Shown here one piece after another: positions 2,776 to 45,162 of a stretch of 64,000 nucleotides of DNA. The first letter of the stretch is position 1, and every line of letters begins with the position of its first letter. The notes beneath the pieces are model-generated. The model worked only from the letters and a program-made list of their open reading frames with translations. It did no database searches and was not told where the DNA came from. The translations under genes and the position numbers were made by a program. Source of the DNA: Octopus sinensis (taxonomy: Eukaryota); contig NC_043006.1 of assembly GCF_006345805.1 (NCBI RefSeq), positions 40,548,001 to 40,612,000 on the forward strand. Direction: 5' to 3'.

Positions 2776-2898
2776 ATCAAATATCACATATTTGGAGACT
2801 GTATAGTACTTGTGGCTCATCAACAGAACTCCTTGAACACTGATCAATCCAAAATGCAAGGTAGCATTCACTTCAGGTAAGTGCTGTACATAATCCGG
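2776..2898 (-). CDS. RPTP-like exon 17: PDYVQHLPEVNATLHFGLISVQGVLLMSHKYYTVSKYVIFD
   Basis: Aligns by eye to KCxxYWP...FGxIxV...YTxRxF; tttttaaatctcttcag acceptor, GTAAGG donor, 123 nt, phase 0-0. Confidence 0.85.
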
Positions 2899-3056
2899 CT
2901 GAAGAGATTTAAAAAGAAATTCAAAAAACCATTAAAAGTATAAAAAAAGAACACATTATCAAGAAACAAGGAAATAAAGAAAAAGAAAAAAGTGGGGAAT
3001 AAGCAGCAGAAGAGGCGGGGAAGGAAGAATGGATTGTACACCCCAGAACAAATGGT

Positions 3057-3582
3057 ATGCTTAGCCACACCTGGCATGTTTAGCCAGACCCAGTGTGTTT
3101 AACCACACCCAGCAAGTTTAGCTATGCCCAGCATGTTTAGCCACACCTGGCATATTTAACTACACCCTGCATGTTTAGTCATGCCTAGCACATTTAGCCA
3201 CACCTGGCATCTTTAGCTATATGCAGTGTGTTTAGCCACGCCTAGCATGTTTAGCTACACCTGGTGTATTTAACCACACCCTGCATGTTTAGCCATGTCT
3301 GGCATGTTTAGTCACACCTGACGTATTTAACCACGCCTCGTATGTTTAGCCAAGCCTGACATGTTTAGCCACACCTGATGTGTTTAGCCATGCCTTGCGT
3401 GTTTAGCCATGCCCAGCATGTTTAGCCATGCCTGGCGTTTAGCCTTGCCTGTGTGTTCAGCCCTGCATGACATTTTTAGCCTTGCATGCACGTTTAGCTA
3501 CACATGGCGTGTTTAACCACGCCTGGCATGTTTAGCTATGCCTGACGTATTTAGCCATGCCTAATGCATTTAGCCACACCTC
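3057..3582. repeat. 19-bp minisatellite (GCATGTTTAGCCACACCTG)n, about 27 diverged copies
   Basis: Periodicity read directly from the sequence. Confidence 0.95.
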
Positions 3583-3902
3583 ATGGACATGAGTGCAAAG
3601 GTGTTGCTGCAGAAAATGGCCAGTGACACTCACTGCAGCAACCATCCCACCTTGAAGGATTAATTTCTCAGACAGGTCATAGATATCCTGATTTTATGAA
3701 GAAAGTCAACAGTGAGGGTTTCAAGAACATCTGAGGTCGCCATGCTGACCAACACAATCTGATAGCAGCCTGTTGTATTCCTGTATTTGAATATTTTCTT
3801 CTTCTCTACATTACAGGTAGCAATACCCAGGCTTGCAGCCAATGCAGCAAGGCTGGAGCTGGAGAACGTGTTGAAGCATTCTAAATGACTTGACAATTCA
3901 TT

Positions 3903-4236
3903 GTTCATAGCTCAGTGGTTAGAGCGTCGAGCTTATGATCGTGAGGTTGTGAGCCCAAATCCCGGACCAGGCTGTGTGTTGTGTTCTTGAGCAAGACACT
4001 TTATTTCACGTTACTCCAGTTAACTCAGCTGTAGAAATGAGTTGCGACGTCACAGATGCCAAGCTGTATCGGCTTTTGCCTTTCCCTCGGATAACACTGC
4101 TGGCATGGAATGGGGAGGCCGGTATGCATGGACGACTGCTGGTTTTCCATAAACAACCTTGCCCGGACTTGTGTCTGGGAGGGTAACTTCCTAGGTGCAA
4201 TCCCATGGTTTGTGTCATGACCAAAGTGGGTCTCAT
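3903..4236 (+). mobile_element. tRNA-derived SINE family G (other copies 6004-6305 +, 17488-17812 -, 56405-56746 - with 11-bp TSD CACTTATATGT)
   Basis: A/B-box head GCTCAGTGGTTAGAGC..., CORE/V-like TGTGTTCTTGAGCAAGACAC...CTCAGCTGTAGAAATGAGT, shared tail. Confidence 0.85.
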
Positions 4237-41504: not shown

Positions 41505-41835
41505 ATGCTCTATGACAGTGTTCCACAGTATTTCTCATCCATCTTATTCTCCCGACCTTGCTCCTTCAGACTACCATTTGTTTCGTAGTTTATGGAATCA
41601 TTTGGGAGACATAACTTTCGCAAGCCAAGAAGAGGTCGAAACTGACATTTCAGAGTTCTTCACTTTGAAACCAAAAGAGTTATAAATTGATGGGATTAAA
41701 AAGCTTTTAAATAGATGGAAGGAAATCATAAATAATCAGGAAAAGTATATTGATGATTAAATTTCAATTAAATATAATATTTGATTACTTGATTTCTTTA
41801 TTCAAAATTCAGACAGAACTTATGGGATGACCTGA
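41505..41835 (+). mobile_element. Mariner transposase 3' fragment with right TIR
   Basis: HPSYSPDLAPSDYHLFRSL...LLNRWKEII motif; TIR end AACTTATGGGATGACCTGAT (also seen near 7780-7800). Confidence 0.9.
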
Positions 41836-42954
41836 TCTCCCTCTCTTCTCTCCCCGCATGACTGGTGTTCGGCCAAGCCTGATCTTTCTTTCTTGGTTCA
41901 GCCATCGTCTGTGCAACAGCTATATTCCTCCCTGTGCCTGTGAAATCTTGTATCCCTGCCATAAGGCTTTATTTCCACACACACCTGCTTAATTTAATTC
42001 GTCCTTAGTCAAAAACATCTGTTGTTATGTCCTGTTACTTGTTTAAAATCTTTTTTTTTTTCCGTCCTTGTTTTCGTATACATTCGCTGCTTTTTTTCTA
42101 AGGAATCTAATGCTCATAGCTTAGATTTTCTTTGGGGCTGGCCAGATCGGAGCCATCTAGAGTATAACCAGCCAAAATTGCAAAGATAATCTGGAACTCG
42201 ACTGAGGAAAGAAAACTCCGAATGACTCATCCATGTTTTCTTTGTATCGTCTATCTGGATGTTTTGTTGTCCATTTTTTGTATCACCTGTCTGGATGTTT
42301 GTGTTCTTGTCCCATTCTGTATTTTTTATATATATATCATCATCATCATCATCATCATCATCATCATCATCATCATTTAACGTCCGCTTTCCATGCTAGC
42401 ATGGGTTGGACGGTTCAACTGGGGTCTGGGGAGCCGGAAGGCTGCACCAGGCCAGTCAGATCTGGCAGTGTTTCTACAGTTGGATGCCCTTCCTAACGCT
42501 AACCACTCCGAGAGTGCCACCGACACAGGTGCCAGACGAGGCTGGCGAACGGCCACGCTCGGATGGTGTTTTTTATGTGCCACCGACACAGGTGCCAGAT
42601 GAGGCTGGCAGATGGCCACGCTCGGATGGTGCTTTTATGTGCCACCGACACAGGTGCCAGATGAGGCTGGCGAACGGCCACGATCGGATGGTGTTTGTTA
42701 CGTGCCCACAGCATGGAGGCCAGTCGATGCGGTACTGGCTACGGCCACGTTATATTTATATATATAGCTGTGATCTTGGAACTTAATGTTCAACCAATTA
42801 TAGCACTAACCCAGTGTACCTATTCATTTAAATCACAAGTGAACTAAAGCCCTCATATTCTTTACGTATATATATATATATATATATATATATATATATA
42901 TAATATATATATATATATATATATATATATATTATATATATATACACATATATA

Positions 42955-44437
42955 TCTCTATTATAAAAGGCAGATTTTATCTGCCTCCCTTTGGGAGTTA
43001 TACAAATCTACAATATAGGATTTCTTCAATTACAATTTACCTAGCAGTTTTGAGAGTACAAGGCATCGCGTCATGCCAGGTCCAGTTTTTTAAAATTTAA
43101 ACTCCAATTAAGCAAAATTTACAGAAAACTTACATTCTGGTGTGTGTGTCAAATGCTTTTCTTAGTCTGGTTTACAGCACACGCAAACGCACACACACAG
43201 TGGGCAAGGAATAAAATGAAAGTAATTCACTTACTGTAGTGAGTGATTCTTTCACTCTGCCTCCCACTCCTCTTTAGACACATAGAAAAAACTTTTATTT
43301 TTTTACATAAGTAATGAGAGCGAAAGAGACTAAGAGAAAGCGATTGTATGACGAGGGAAGTTCCTTTGAAGTTACCGTGCATGGGACTCATTGATGTACA
43401 TGTGTGTGTGTGTGTGTTTGATGGAGTGTGGGAGAGACAGACAGTATGTTGTGTAAGTGAAGTGCTTCTGTTAGTGTGTGTGAAGAGACAGAGAGAGTAA
43501 TGTGTGAAAGAGAGAGATAACTGAAATTTTTTACTCGGTTTATGTGTATATATGTATGTATGCATGTATGTGTGTGTGTGTGTGTATGTATGTATTATAT
43601 ATAAAAGAAAGGTTGTGTGTCTGTCTACTCCGATTTAGATTCCTAACTACTCCCACATTTTGCGATGCAGTTTACCAAAACCGGGTATCTTATAGTCGTG
43701 ATTCATATCGAGCCCTTCTGGGTATTAGCGCGCGTCTACGATGAGTCTATGATTTTACAAATAATTTACCATCATTTTTTTCCATTTTAATGCATTTTTT
43801 AAAAATAAACGGAAGTAACTCTCAAACTTCACACCAATATGCGTGCTCATATGCGACGTAATATCACATCACCAGCATTTCCTCACACCCTCCTTGCACT
43901 TGGCGAAGGCAAAATACCAGGGGATGAAAATGGTAATATTGCCATCGATTCCATTTGTACCATTGTTAAGACGCCTTCTGATCTCAGAGATGCAGTGTTC
44001 CCAGATTTACAAGCTAATTATCAGAATATGGATTGGATTGGCAAAAAGGCTATACTGGCCCCGAGGAATATAAAACTGTTCACCATATTAATGATGAAAT
44101 GCTAAAACTCATTCCTGGGGAAGTCGATGTATATCAGTCTATCGATACAACTCCTGACCCAGAGGACGTCATCAACTATCCAATAGAGGTACTCAATTCC
44201 TTTGAGCACCCCGGACTACCACCACACTTTCTCAAACTTAAAGTTAGTGCCCCTATAATGCTCATCAGAAATTTGGTTCCCCCAAAACAATGCAATGGCA
44301 CACGTTTGGCGTTAAGTCCTTATCTCCCACCGTAAGCTTATTTCAATATTTGCCTGAATAATCATCATAATTCAGTGCAATCATTAACAGTACTTTCAAG
44401 CAATTCAGCCCCGAGCAATGCCGGGCAATTCTGCTAG
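42955..44437 (+). mobile_element. Non-autonomous Helitron with a frameshifted PIF1-like helicase fragment
   Basis: A|TC 5' end, GC hairpin 44408-26, CTAG|T 3' end; helicase motifs AILAPRN, INDEML, YPIEVLNS..PGLPPH.L.LKV.APIMLIRNL....CNGTRL at 43839-44335. Confidence 0.9.
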
Positions 44438-45086
44438 TATATACATATATATATATACATATATATATGTATATACATATATATATATGTATATATGTAT
44501 ATATATATATATATATTCATATATATATACATATATATATACACATATAGATACATACATATATACATACATATATATATGTATATGTATATAAACATAT
44601 ATATATATACATATACATATACATATATATATTCATAAATATATATATATATATATATAAATATATATATGTATATTCATATATATACATCTTTCTATCT
44701 ATCTATCTATTTTCTATCTATCTATCTATCTATATATATATATATATATACACACACACACACACACACACACACACACACACACACACACACACACATA
44801 CATACAAACCTCTTACCAAACAGTCATGTCTGCATCCATCCATGCCTACTCTTCCAGAAAAAAAAGTAAGACCACATTTGATTATGCAGTCCTAGATACA
44901 TACATACATATATAAATCAAAAGACGAGTGAGCTGTTCATACTTGGAAGGACATTTATCACATAATATCCTTTATCAAATTTGAACATTAAACAACAACA
45001 ACAACAACAATACTAACAAGCAAACAATAATGATGACAATAACAACAACAACAATCACAAAAACAACAAAAAAGAAAATATCTTAC

Positions 45087-45162
45087 TTGAGTGAGTCAGA
45101 GAGATGAAATTGAATAAACCAAAAATAAAAAGGGAAACCATGGACACTGATGCGATCTTCAT
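45087..45162 (-). CDS. RPTP-like gene coding exon 1: signal peptide MKIASVSMVSLFIFGLFNFISLTHS
   Basis: ATG (cat at 45160-62), hydrophobic signal-peptide-like stretch, GTAAGA donor, 76 nt ending in phase 1, joins exon 2 in frame. Confidence 0.85.

Follow-up and report, generated by a model that had tools for sequence, protein, structure and literature searches.

A probable receptor pseudophosphatase with an EGF and F-type-lectin-like ectodomain in Octopus sinensis

The ectodomains of receptor-type protein tyrosine phosphatases (RPTPs) are mostly discussed as assemblies of Ig, FN3, MAM and CA domains, placed outside the membrane and followed inside the cell by protein tyrosine phosphatase (PTP) domains. 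In one such receptor, PTPRU, the two PTP domains (D1 and D2) are both inactive, and the protein binds substrates of related phosphatases and has been proposed to act as a competitor (PMC7320164). F-type lectins are defined by a fucose-binding motif, HX24RXDX4(R/K), and have a cation motif, h2DGx (PMC5712786). Here we describe a gene of Octopus sinensis that joins an ectodomain of EGF-like and F-type-lectin-like modules to PTP homology, and which we consider probably encodes a receptor pseudophosphatase, conserved but non-catalytic, that descends from a family of active lectin-EGF RPTPs. The gene lies on the minus strand, from 45162 to 2776, of a 64,000-nucleotide stretch of contig NC_043006.1 (positions 40,548,001 to 40,612,000, RefSeq assembly GCF_006345805.1), which is the window referred to throughout and in which all coordinates are given unless stated otherwise. 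An earlier reading of the window from its letters alone (the sequence-only reading) had proposed a lineage-specific receptor coupling a lectin fold to a phosphatase fold.

The exons were rebuilt from a provisional join of fragments, from tblastn of an O. bimaculoides (P0001) and an O. vulgaris (P0002) protein onto the window, and by inspection of each boundary. This gave 17 exons in consistent phase, with AG at every acceptor and GT at every donor, and coding-looking fragments between 2.7 and 45.2 kb were found on the minus strand only. The 17-exon chain of the sequence-only reading was reproduced by this independent rebuild with both of its end coordinates exact, and the gene is real, far beyond what chance would produce. 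Position 45162 marks the ATG of the signal peptide, and 2776 is the last base ahead of a GTAAGG donor; because this is a splice donor with the frame still open, it does not mark the end of the gene, which the window truncates. The gene continues past window coordinate 1, where the remainder of D1 plus D2 follow (~390 further residues in orthologs). Single-copy in octopus and encoding a type-I membrane protein, it is thus represented in the window by its 5' two thirds and is not complete there. The joined frame runs without a stop for 660 aa when the donor of exon 16 is placed at 5315 and for 656 aa when it is placed at 5327, a range that includes the 658-aa translation given earlier, although this is a fragment which covers only positions 1-117 of the 234 in the Pfam PTP profile (PF00102, E=6.4e-29, residues 541-653).

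Phosphatase homology in the window is carried by five exons. Exon 13 (14741-14828) opens D1 and is followed by exon 14 (11379-11452; YDHSRVVL...DYINASYIH), by exon 15 (7506-7530), a 25-nt micro-exon (DKKYISTQ) present in O. bimaculoides models and intact in O. vulgaris DNA, by exon 16 (5327-5415) and by exon 17 (2776-2898), a D1 beta-sheet segment (PDYVQHLPEV...YTVSKYVIFD). This N-terminal half retains DYINASYI, DFWRMIW and IVLLT; a composite D1 matches PTPRA, PTPRS and LAR with E-values as low as 9e-71, and Pfam detects D1 plus D2 in the O. vulgaris protein. Motif decay is already visible here, with KNRF in exon 13 in place of KNRY and (KKI)PDYVQHLPE opposite KCAQYWPD of PTPRA, and a scan of both window strands for P-loop and WPD motifs yielded nothing beyond KNRF and a spurious WSD. 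There are two candidate donors for the 3' end of exon 16, CAG/GTAAAA at 5327, which the O. bimaculoides RefSeq model uses at the equivalent site, and ATT/GTATTT at 5315, an alternative donor 12 nt further on that would add VKKI. Exon 17 shows 0/123 differences from O. vulgaris and aligns with the corresponding beta-sheet segment of PTPRA D1, and it is skipped by the O. bimaculoides RefSeq model. Because it is 123 nt long and in phase 0-0, its skipping keeps the frame, and we retain it in the model flagged as a possible cassette exon.

The residues of catalysis were read from the orthologs. In O. vulgaris DNA the next two exons, with canonical splice sites, encode ...FTAWPEGMIP...YPIVVQSK followed by TGAGSTGAYICLDILL, and in O. 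bimaculoides (P0124, P0292) the same region reads ...FTGWPEGMNP...VVQSKAGAGSTG. When D1 is aligned with PTPRA (6uzt), VVQSKTGAGSTG of O. vulgaris stands opposite VVHCSAGVGRTG, and WPE stands opposite WPD. In both orthologs D1 has VVQSK(T/A)GAGSTG instead of VHCSAGxGRTG and the signature (I/V)HCxxGxxR(S/T)G is absent, with the P-loop His replaced by Gln, the Cys nucleophile by Ser, the P-loop Arg by Ser and the Asp general acid of the WPD loop by Glu. D2 is likewise degenerate, reading VHNRCGYFESG in O. vulgaris and VHCRGNYFKSG in O. bimaculoides. Because of the Cys-based mechanism of class-I PTPs, the D1 of these orthologs would be unable to form the thiophosphate intermediate. Cys-to-Ser is the mutation used in the laboratory to inactivate PTPs, and D1 of the two orthologs carries its natural counterpart. 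The coupling to a phosphatase is therefore upheld as domain homology, but not as chemistry, since the orthologs lack the nucleophile, the P-loop Arg and the WPD Asp.

Despite these losses, all parts of the gene are under constraint. The concatenated exons match the O. bimaculoides protein P0001 (UniProt A0A0L8HYR5, 621 aa) at E=7e-277, and O. vulgaris P0002 (CAI9728057.1, 833 aa) is near-identical to the window model across their overlap. The 79-kb O. vulgaris locus from which the latter derives (L001, OX597822.1:74652107-74731070) is 96-97% identical to the window along long stretches, so that the window stems from a very close relative of that assembly or from another haplotype, and has all 17 exons with their AG and GT intact, including exons 1, 2, 6, 7, 15 and 16, which are unannotated there. 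Between the two genomes there are 4 differences in 1980 coding positions, 2 of them amino-acid changing, compared with 85 in 5048 positions of the intron flanks, taken as the 150 nt adjoining the exons (Fisher's exact p=1.6e-8). Likewise, the O. bimaculoides RefSeq protein XP_014768573.2 (P0292, 1007 aa, 'receptor-type tyrosine-protein phosphatase alpha') is collinear over its whole length, signal peptide to C-terminus, with a composite of the window model and the C-terminal part from O. vulgaris, exons 16 and 17 being the sole structural difference. Identity to this protein is 90.8% in the ectodomain, 90.4% in the transmembrane and juxtamembrane region, 94.0% in D1 and 92.5% in the linker plus D2. 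The intracellular region is conserved between species no less than the ectodomain, which argues for a retained, non-catalytic function.

Public models of the gene all omit real conserved exons. CAI9728057.1 lacks exons 1, 2, 6, 7, 15 and 16 and begins at an upstream 'MLEQ' exon, with no signal peptide, and it was rejected as a reference model because the exons that it omits are intact in its own genome. The O. bimaculoides gene is divided between A0A0L8HYR5 and UPI0006956AA4, and XP_014768573.2 is without exon 17. In addition, the automatic names ('PTP alpha', 'PTPRO/PTPN11...') conceal both the type of the ectodomain and the dead active site.

Using the octopus paralog P0004 as query against 1.84 billion representative proteins, we examined the best 150 matches, and these contained at least 43 further 50%-identity clusters with one or more F-type-lectin-like domains (FTLDs) N-terminal to one or more PTP domains, most with a transmembrane segment in between. 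They come from Haliotis spp., Pomacea, Littorina, Bulinus, Mercenaria, Ruditapes, Dreissena, Mactra, Solemya, the brachiopod Lingula and the nemertean Tubulanus. In a Pfam check of cluster members, PF22633 and/or PF00754 occurred together with PF00102 in 8/8, with PF22633 above its gathering cutoff in 5/8. The design of FTLD, with or without EGF repeats, a transmembrane segment and PTP is common in Lophotrochozoa, where it stands in databases under generic RPTP names, and the receptor is not the lineage-specific one that had been proposed from the sequence: gastropods, bivalves, a brachiopod and a nemertean all have relatives of this kind. A common architecture was among the outcomes that the sequence-only reading had named as refuting it, and for the databases this outcome has been reached. 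The family is nevertheless under-described: in the literature searched we found no paper on a lectin-PTP fusion, and two F-type-lectin reviews make no mention of phosphatases. Gorbushin and Borisova (2015, Dev Comp Immunol) reportedly described 'fucolectin-related molecules' of Littorina with an FTP domain and EGF repeats. A homology search with the ectodomain alone gave 4 matches, and one with the C-terminal half, at an over-strict cutoff, a single protein.

Within this family the loss of the active site is exceptional. The D1 motif HC(X5)R is retained in 42/47 members, and four of the exceptions (P0001, P0127, P0128 and P0180) are truncated or partial models, the fifth being P0002, the O. 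vulgaris ortholog of our gene, in which the motif is absent; the family-wide column for the WPD pattern was left unused, as it is confounded by an upstream YWP(D/E) motif. The octopus 'PTPRT/kappa-like' proteins P0003, P0004, P0294 and P0295 combine FTLD, EGF repeats, a transmembrane segment and PTP with an intact VVHCSAGVGRTG. It is these active octopus FTLD-EGF RPTPs that are the nearest relatives of the juxtamembrane segment, D1 and D2 of our gene (D1 190 bits, vs ~143 for vertebrate PTPRE/A), and by sequence similarity the gene is placed as their divergent paralog. A further kind of octopod paralog, resembling MEGF10/11, has a collinear ectodomain and no PTP, and the two kinds together explain how the gene is assembled. 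Several FTLD-EGF RPTP paralogs on the 84.7-Mb chromosome of O. vulgaris have consecutive accessions (CAI9733298-CAI9733312), which suggests a tandem cluster of active family members.

The membrane topology follows from hydropathy. The model has just two hydrophobic segments, residues 1-25 and ~437-457, the latter followed by the basic stretch KYCKIKKYTACKKR, and a signal peptide with a single transmembrane helix gives type-I topology. Exon 1 (45087-45162) holds the ATG and the signal peptide MKIASVSMVSLFIFGLFNFISLTHS, ends in phase 1 and is identical in O. vulgaris. The transmembrane helix ESFLQADSLIVVCVILLVICLVMI is encoded by exon 10 (20970-21042), with the hydropathy peak at residues 430-457, and exon 11 (19651-19721) adds a basic stop-transfer and juxtamembrane segment, YKYCKIKKYTACKKRLSEVTLVSS. 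Exon 12 (16257-16387) continues the juxtamembrane region (VPDSIPFDESVYIQP...KLEPFSKDFS), and it has relatives only among the octopus FTLD-EGF RPTP paralogs. If the exon 11 donor were read through (19651-19630, minus strand), the frame would give ...EVTLVSSGKKSYFFI and then a stop; such a short cytoplasmic tail recalls the MEGF10/11-like paralogs that lack PTP and, speculatively, could mark a short isoform.

The ectodomain between these segments contains 35 Cys and 10 N-glycosylation sequons. Pfam found no FN3, Ig, MAM, CA or EGF model in the window model at E<=1, and so the absence of FN3 and Ig domains noted earlier was borne out and extends to MAM and CA. The wider description as a type-I, receptor-PTP-like protein with EGF modules and an F-type-lectin fold outside the membrane is likewise supported. 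Exons 2-9, which encode the ectodomain modules, are each in phase 1-1, and uniform phase 1-1 exons are the classic signature of shuffled extracellular modules. Exon 2 (40118-40195) encodes a Cys-rich N-terminal segment, KKCIRKNGDCVAADVHHCKTACSVIP, that is kept in the MEGF10/11-like paralogs P0121 and P0122. Three EGF-like modules follow at intervals. The first lies in exon 3 (37271-37420; ENCNKG...GYEGPNCQK), which is Cys-rich and has weak tblastn matches to EGF repeats of P0004, and the third in exon 9 (22053-22169; QCLPGFYGNLC...), both being assigned by Cys pattern and paralog alignment only. The second, in exon 6 (28393-28536; CSPGWFGEEC...GENCQN), has the 8-Cys pattern of the laminin-type MEGF/SREC class (CxPGxxGxxC...CxC...C...G.C) and matches the EGF repeats of SCARF1 (8hna) at E=1.2e-4, 6u11 at E=0.005 and, weakly, the EGF repeats of Tie2.

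Exons 7 (27368-27613) and 8 (24314-24484; ...LSLCEVEVL) encode the N-terminal two thirds and the C-terminal third, respectively, of a domain with F-type-lectin homology. By phmmer it matches striped-bass FBP32 (3cqo) at E=3.7e-6 and eel agglutinin (1k12) at E=6e-4, and tblastn aligns it with the FTLD of paralog P0004 at E=1.7e-14. PF22633 scores 23.4 bits on the whole model and 25.9 bits on the isolated domain, below the gathering cutoff of 27.8, and PF00754 has no match on the window model; paralog P0004 passes both. AlphaFold2 models were made of the 91%-identical ortholog P0001 and of sub-sequences, and only the FTLD region was interpreted, where the P0001 model is confident (predicted local distance difference test score, pLDDT, 70-86). 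In a Foldseek search with this model, FBP32 (3cqo) ranked first (E=5e-9), followed by lectinolysin, SpX and AAA, with target template-modelling scores of 0.60-0.70. Exons 7-8 are a genuine F-type-lectin homolog with a predicted jelly-roll fold.

The fucose site of this domain is lost, and the cation site is kept. Of the H/R/R triad, the His is replaced by Ser, CSST in exon 7 standing for the canonical C(T/S)H(T/S), Asp occupies the place of the first Arg, and a deletion has removed the loop that bears the second basic residue; in the alignment, NRGDCCxER lies opposite TDNLYQ plus a gap. The Ca-binding motif h2DGx is retained in exon 7 (SVVDGN). The proposed coupling to a lectin accordingly stands for the fold, but not for the fucose-binding motif.

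The remaining ectodomain module, domain A, is a beta domain of ~105 aa formed by exon 4 (30356-30511; RLYHEF...RLHGRIS) and exon 5 (29546-29701; DTITNIF...NIKLFG). It has no Pfam match, and its AlphaFold2 model is poor (pLDDT 57). All top Foldseek matches of that model are to factor VIII C2, lectinolysin, neuropilin b1 and the CASPR2 discoidin domain, and these are weak (E=0.014-0.1, template-modelling score ~0.35). An assignment of domain A as an FTLD by profile-profile comparison (hhalign) was not significant, with a probability of 2.4%, and was dropped. The full-length model aligns over ~300 columns with two-domain F-lectin and discoidin proteins. Domain A is possibly a reduced galactose-binding-like sandwich, and the galactose-binding-like label given to exons 4-5 from the sequence is plausible from the discoidin-type Foldseek matches, but unproven.

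Three other explanations were weighed against that of a conserved pseudophosphatase. Were the gene a decaying, non-functional copy, a unitary pseudogene in the making whose dead motifs are neutral decay, then the loss of both hallmark active sites, the inconsistency of the public models and the break in O. vulgaris homology just ahead of the next exon in O. sinensis would all fit. We regard this as unlikely, since the 17 exons contain no stop or frameshift, the splice sites are intact in two genomes, the exons are ~8-fold less diverged than the intron flanks, and O. bimaculoides and O. vulgaris both have an open frame of 1007-1052 aa in which each region, the dead PTP domains included, is 90-94% identical. 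It is very unlikely that the gene encodes a catalytically active receptor tyrosine phosphatase, with a lectin-type ectodomain regulating a working D1. The conserved DYINASYI, DFWRMIW and IVLLT of the D1 half in the window are compatible with such an enzyme, as are the retention of HC(X5)R in nearly all other FTLD-EGF RPTPs and the location of the O. sinensis catalytic exons beyond the window; however, O. vulgaris, at 99.8% identity in coding sequence, and O. bimaculoides both have Ser for Cys, Ser for Arg and Glu for the WPD Asp, and within the window itself KCxxYWP is degenerate already in exons 16-17 and KNRY has become KNRF. More improbable still is that the chain is a chimera, in which a MEGF10/11-like lectin-EGF protein with a short tail has been joined to a separate downstream PTP gene. 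Paralogs with a collinear ectodomain do stop soon after the transmembrane segment with no PTP (P0121 from Argonauta; P0122, P0298 and P0299 from three Octopus species), and read-through of the exon 11 donor gives just such a short tail. Against a chimera, the phases are continuous from the transmembrane through the juxtamembrane to the PTP exons, with canonical sites; the annotation pipelines behind the JGI/UniProt (P0001), RefSeq (P0292) and O. vulgaris (P0002) models join ectodomain, transmembrane and PTP exons; homology links the juxtamembrane segment to its counterpart in bona fide octopus FTLD-EGF RPTPs; and dozens of relatives are equally fused.

Several points weigh against the pseudophosphatase itself. 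The catalytic exons lie outside the window, and the P-loop state of O. sinensis is taken from two relatives; a (TA)n tract near 495-540 is where homology to O. vulgaris ends, 58 bp short of the place that the next (WPE/VVQSK) exon has in O. vulgaris; and the public models disagree on exons 1, 2, 6, 7 and 15-17. The structure models have low overall confidence (mean pLDDT 51 and 57), and the FTLD may have a non-fucose glycan specificity. Furthermore, the loss of activity is deduced from motif residues, and PTP folds with Ser for Cys can still bind ligands, and unusual chemistry is conceivable. With these points considered, a conserved non-catalytic receptor remains in our judgement the probable identity of the gene product, and O. 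sinensis presumably shares the dead catalytic exons of its orthologs. At the left edge of the window, positions 1-479 match neither the 79-kb O. vulgaris locus nor any other part of the window. Collinearity with O. vulgaris would have placed the next exon at ~250-420, and no frame there encodes PKSKPF...; the segment may reflect an insertion, an assembly join or sequence deleted from the other genome.

With exon structure, domain order, membrane topology, loss of motif residues, constraint on all parts and origin as a divergent paralog established, a working scheme for the protein can be proposed. The ectodomain, built of a Cys-rich N-terminus, three EGF-like modules of predicted MEGF/SREC type, a small beta domain and one divergent FTLD, would bind an extracellular protein or a non-fucose glycan ligand. 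A single transmembrane helix would then lead to tandem classical PTP domains, both predicted to be catalytically dead, and by analogy with PTPRU and its relation to PTPRK the intracellular part may act as a scaffold, or as a competitor or decoy to active lectin-EGF RPTP paralogs. More tentatively, and with slightly more doubt than belief, we suggest that octopods keep a 'doubly dead' receptor under purifying selection, one that has lost its fucose site and both PTP active sites and signals through binding alone, for instance as a scaffold or decoy that opposes the active paralogs. If true, it would be an invertebrate parallel to human PTPRU of independent origin. The locus is also part of a large lophotrochozoan family, hardly described so far, that sets an F-type-lectin fold and MEGF-type EGF modules on tandem PTP domains, and it would offer a natural example of a receptor whose fold is retained while the chemistry of both ends is lost, which bears on how pseudoenzymes originate by duplication beside active paralogs.

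The region around the gene is AT-rich (GC 0.30-0.42) and rich in microsatellites and transposon debris. Approximately 18 kb upstream of the RPTP-like gene and on the opposite strand, an open reading frame of 216 aa (63169-63819, plus strand) carries BTB (E=9e-21) and BACK (E=2e-15) domains and is the start of a Kelch-like/BTB-BACK gene. Also upstream, 50579-50815 (plus strand) and 49911-50336 (minus strand) are reverse-transcriptase-like (RVT_1, E=0.004, below cutoff) and apparently retrotransposon debris. Within intron 1, an open reading frame fragment at 44033-44335 (plus strand) matches the Pif1 helicase 2B domain (E=1.7e-12) and is probably a remnant of a Helitron-type transposon, and another at 41443-41685 (plus strand), with no Pfam match at E<=0.01, ends in ...HPSYSPDLAPSDYHLFRSL, which we take to resemble the C-terminus of mariner/Tc1 transposases. 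Beyond the window, the next downstream gene in O. vulgaris (L001 78211-78964, minus strand) encodes a 1603-aa protein with multiple SRCR domains.

Set beside known systems, the gene shares with the F-type lectins Anguilla AAA (1k12), Morone FBP32 (3cqo), lectinolysin and SpX the homology, the predicted jelly-roll and the Ca motif, and unlike them it lacks the fucose motif and falls below the PF22633 gathering threshold. The octopod MEGF10/11-like proteins, namely XP_029647801 of O. sinensis, XP_014781958 of O. bimaculoides ('Fucolectin tachylectin-4 pentraxin-1 domain-containing protein'), GAB1603200 of Argonauta and a counterpart in O. vulgaris, are collinear with it from the first Cys-rich segment to the third EGF-like module, at 39-40% identity over 96% of the ectodomain, but they carry additional EGF repeats and end in a short cytoplasmic tail that lacks PTP domains. 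Lophotrochozoan receptors of the FTLD(+EGF)-transmembrane-PTP design, such as O. vulgaris CAI9733311/CAI9733298 ('PTPRT-like'), Haliotis XP_048252782 ('PTPRE-like'), Lingula XP_013415221 ('PTPRK') and Littorina littorea AJA37903.1 ('fucolectin-related molecule'), share with it an N-terminal domain of F-type-lectin/discoidin fold, MEGF-type EGF repeats, one transmembrane segment and one or two classical PTP domains. In comparison with these receptors, our gene is extended at its N-terminus by modules that it shares with the PTP-less paralogs, namely a Cys-rich segment and two EGF modules with domain A between them, and whereas those receptors keep VHCSAG(V/I)GRTG in D1 in 42/47 cases, its orthologs have VVQSK(T/A)GAGSTG and WPE. 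The nearest functional match would be PTPRU, by analogy, as a receptor-type PTP in which both domains are inactive and which binds substrates of its paralogs. PTPRU differs in its MAM-Ig-FN3 ectodomain and in keeping the catalytic Cys, being inactivated by structural rearrangements instead, and as the two proteins are not orthologous their resemblance would be one of function.

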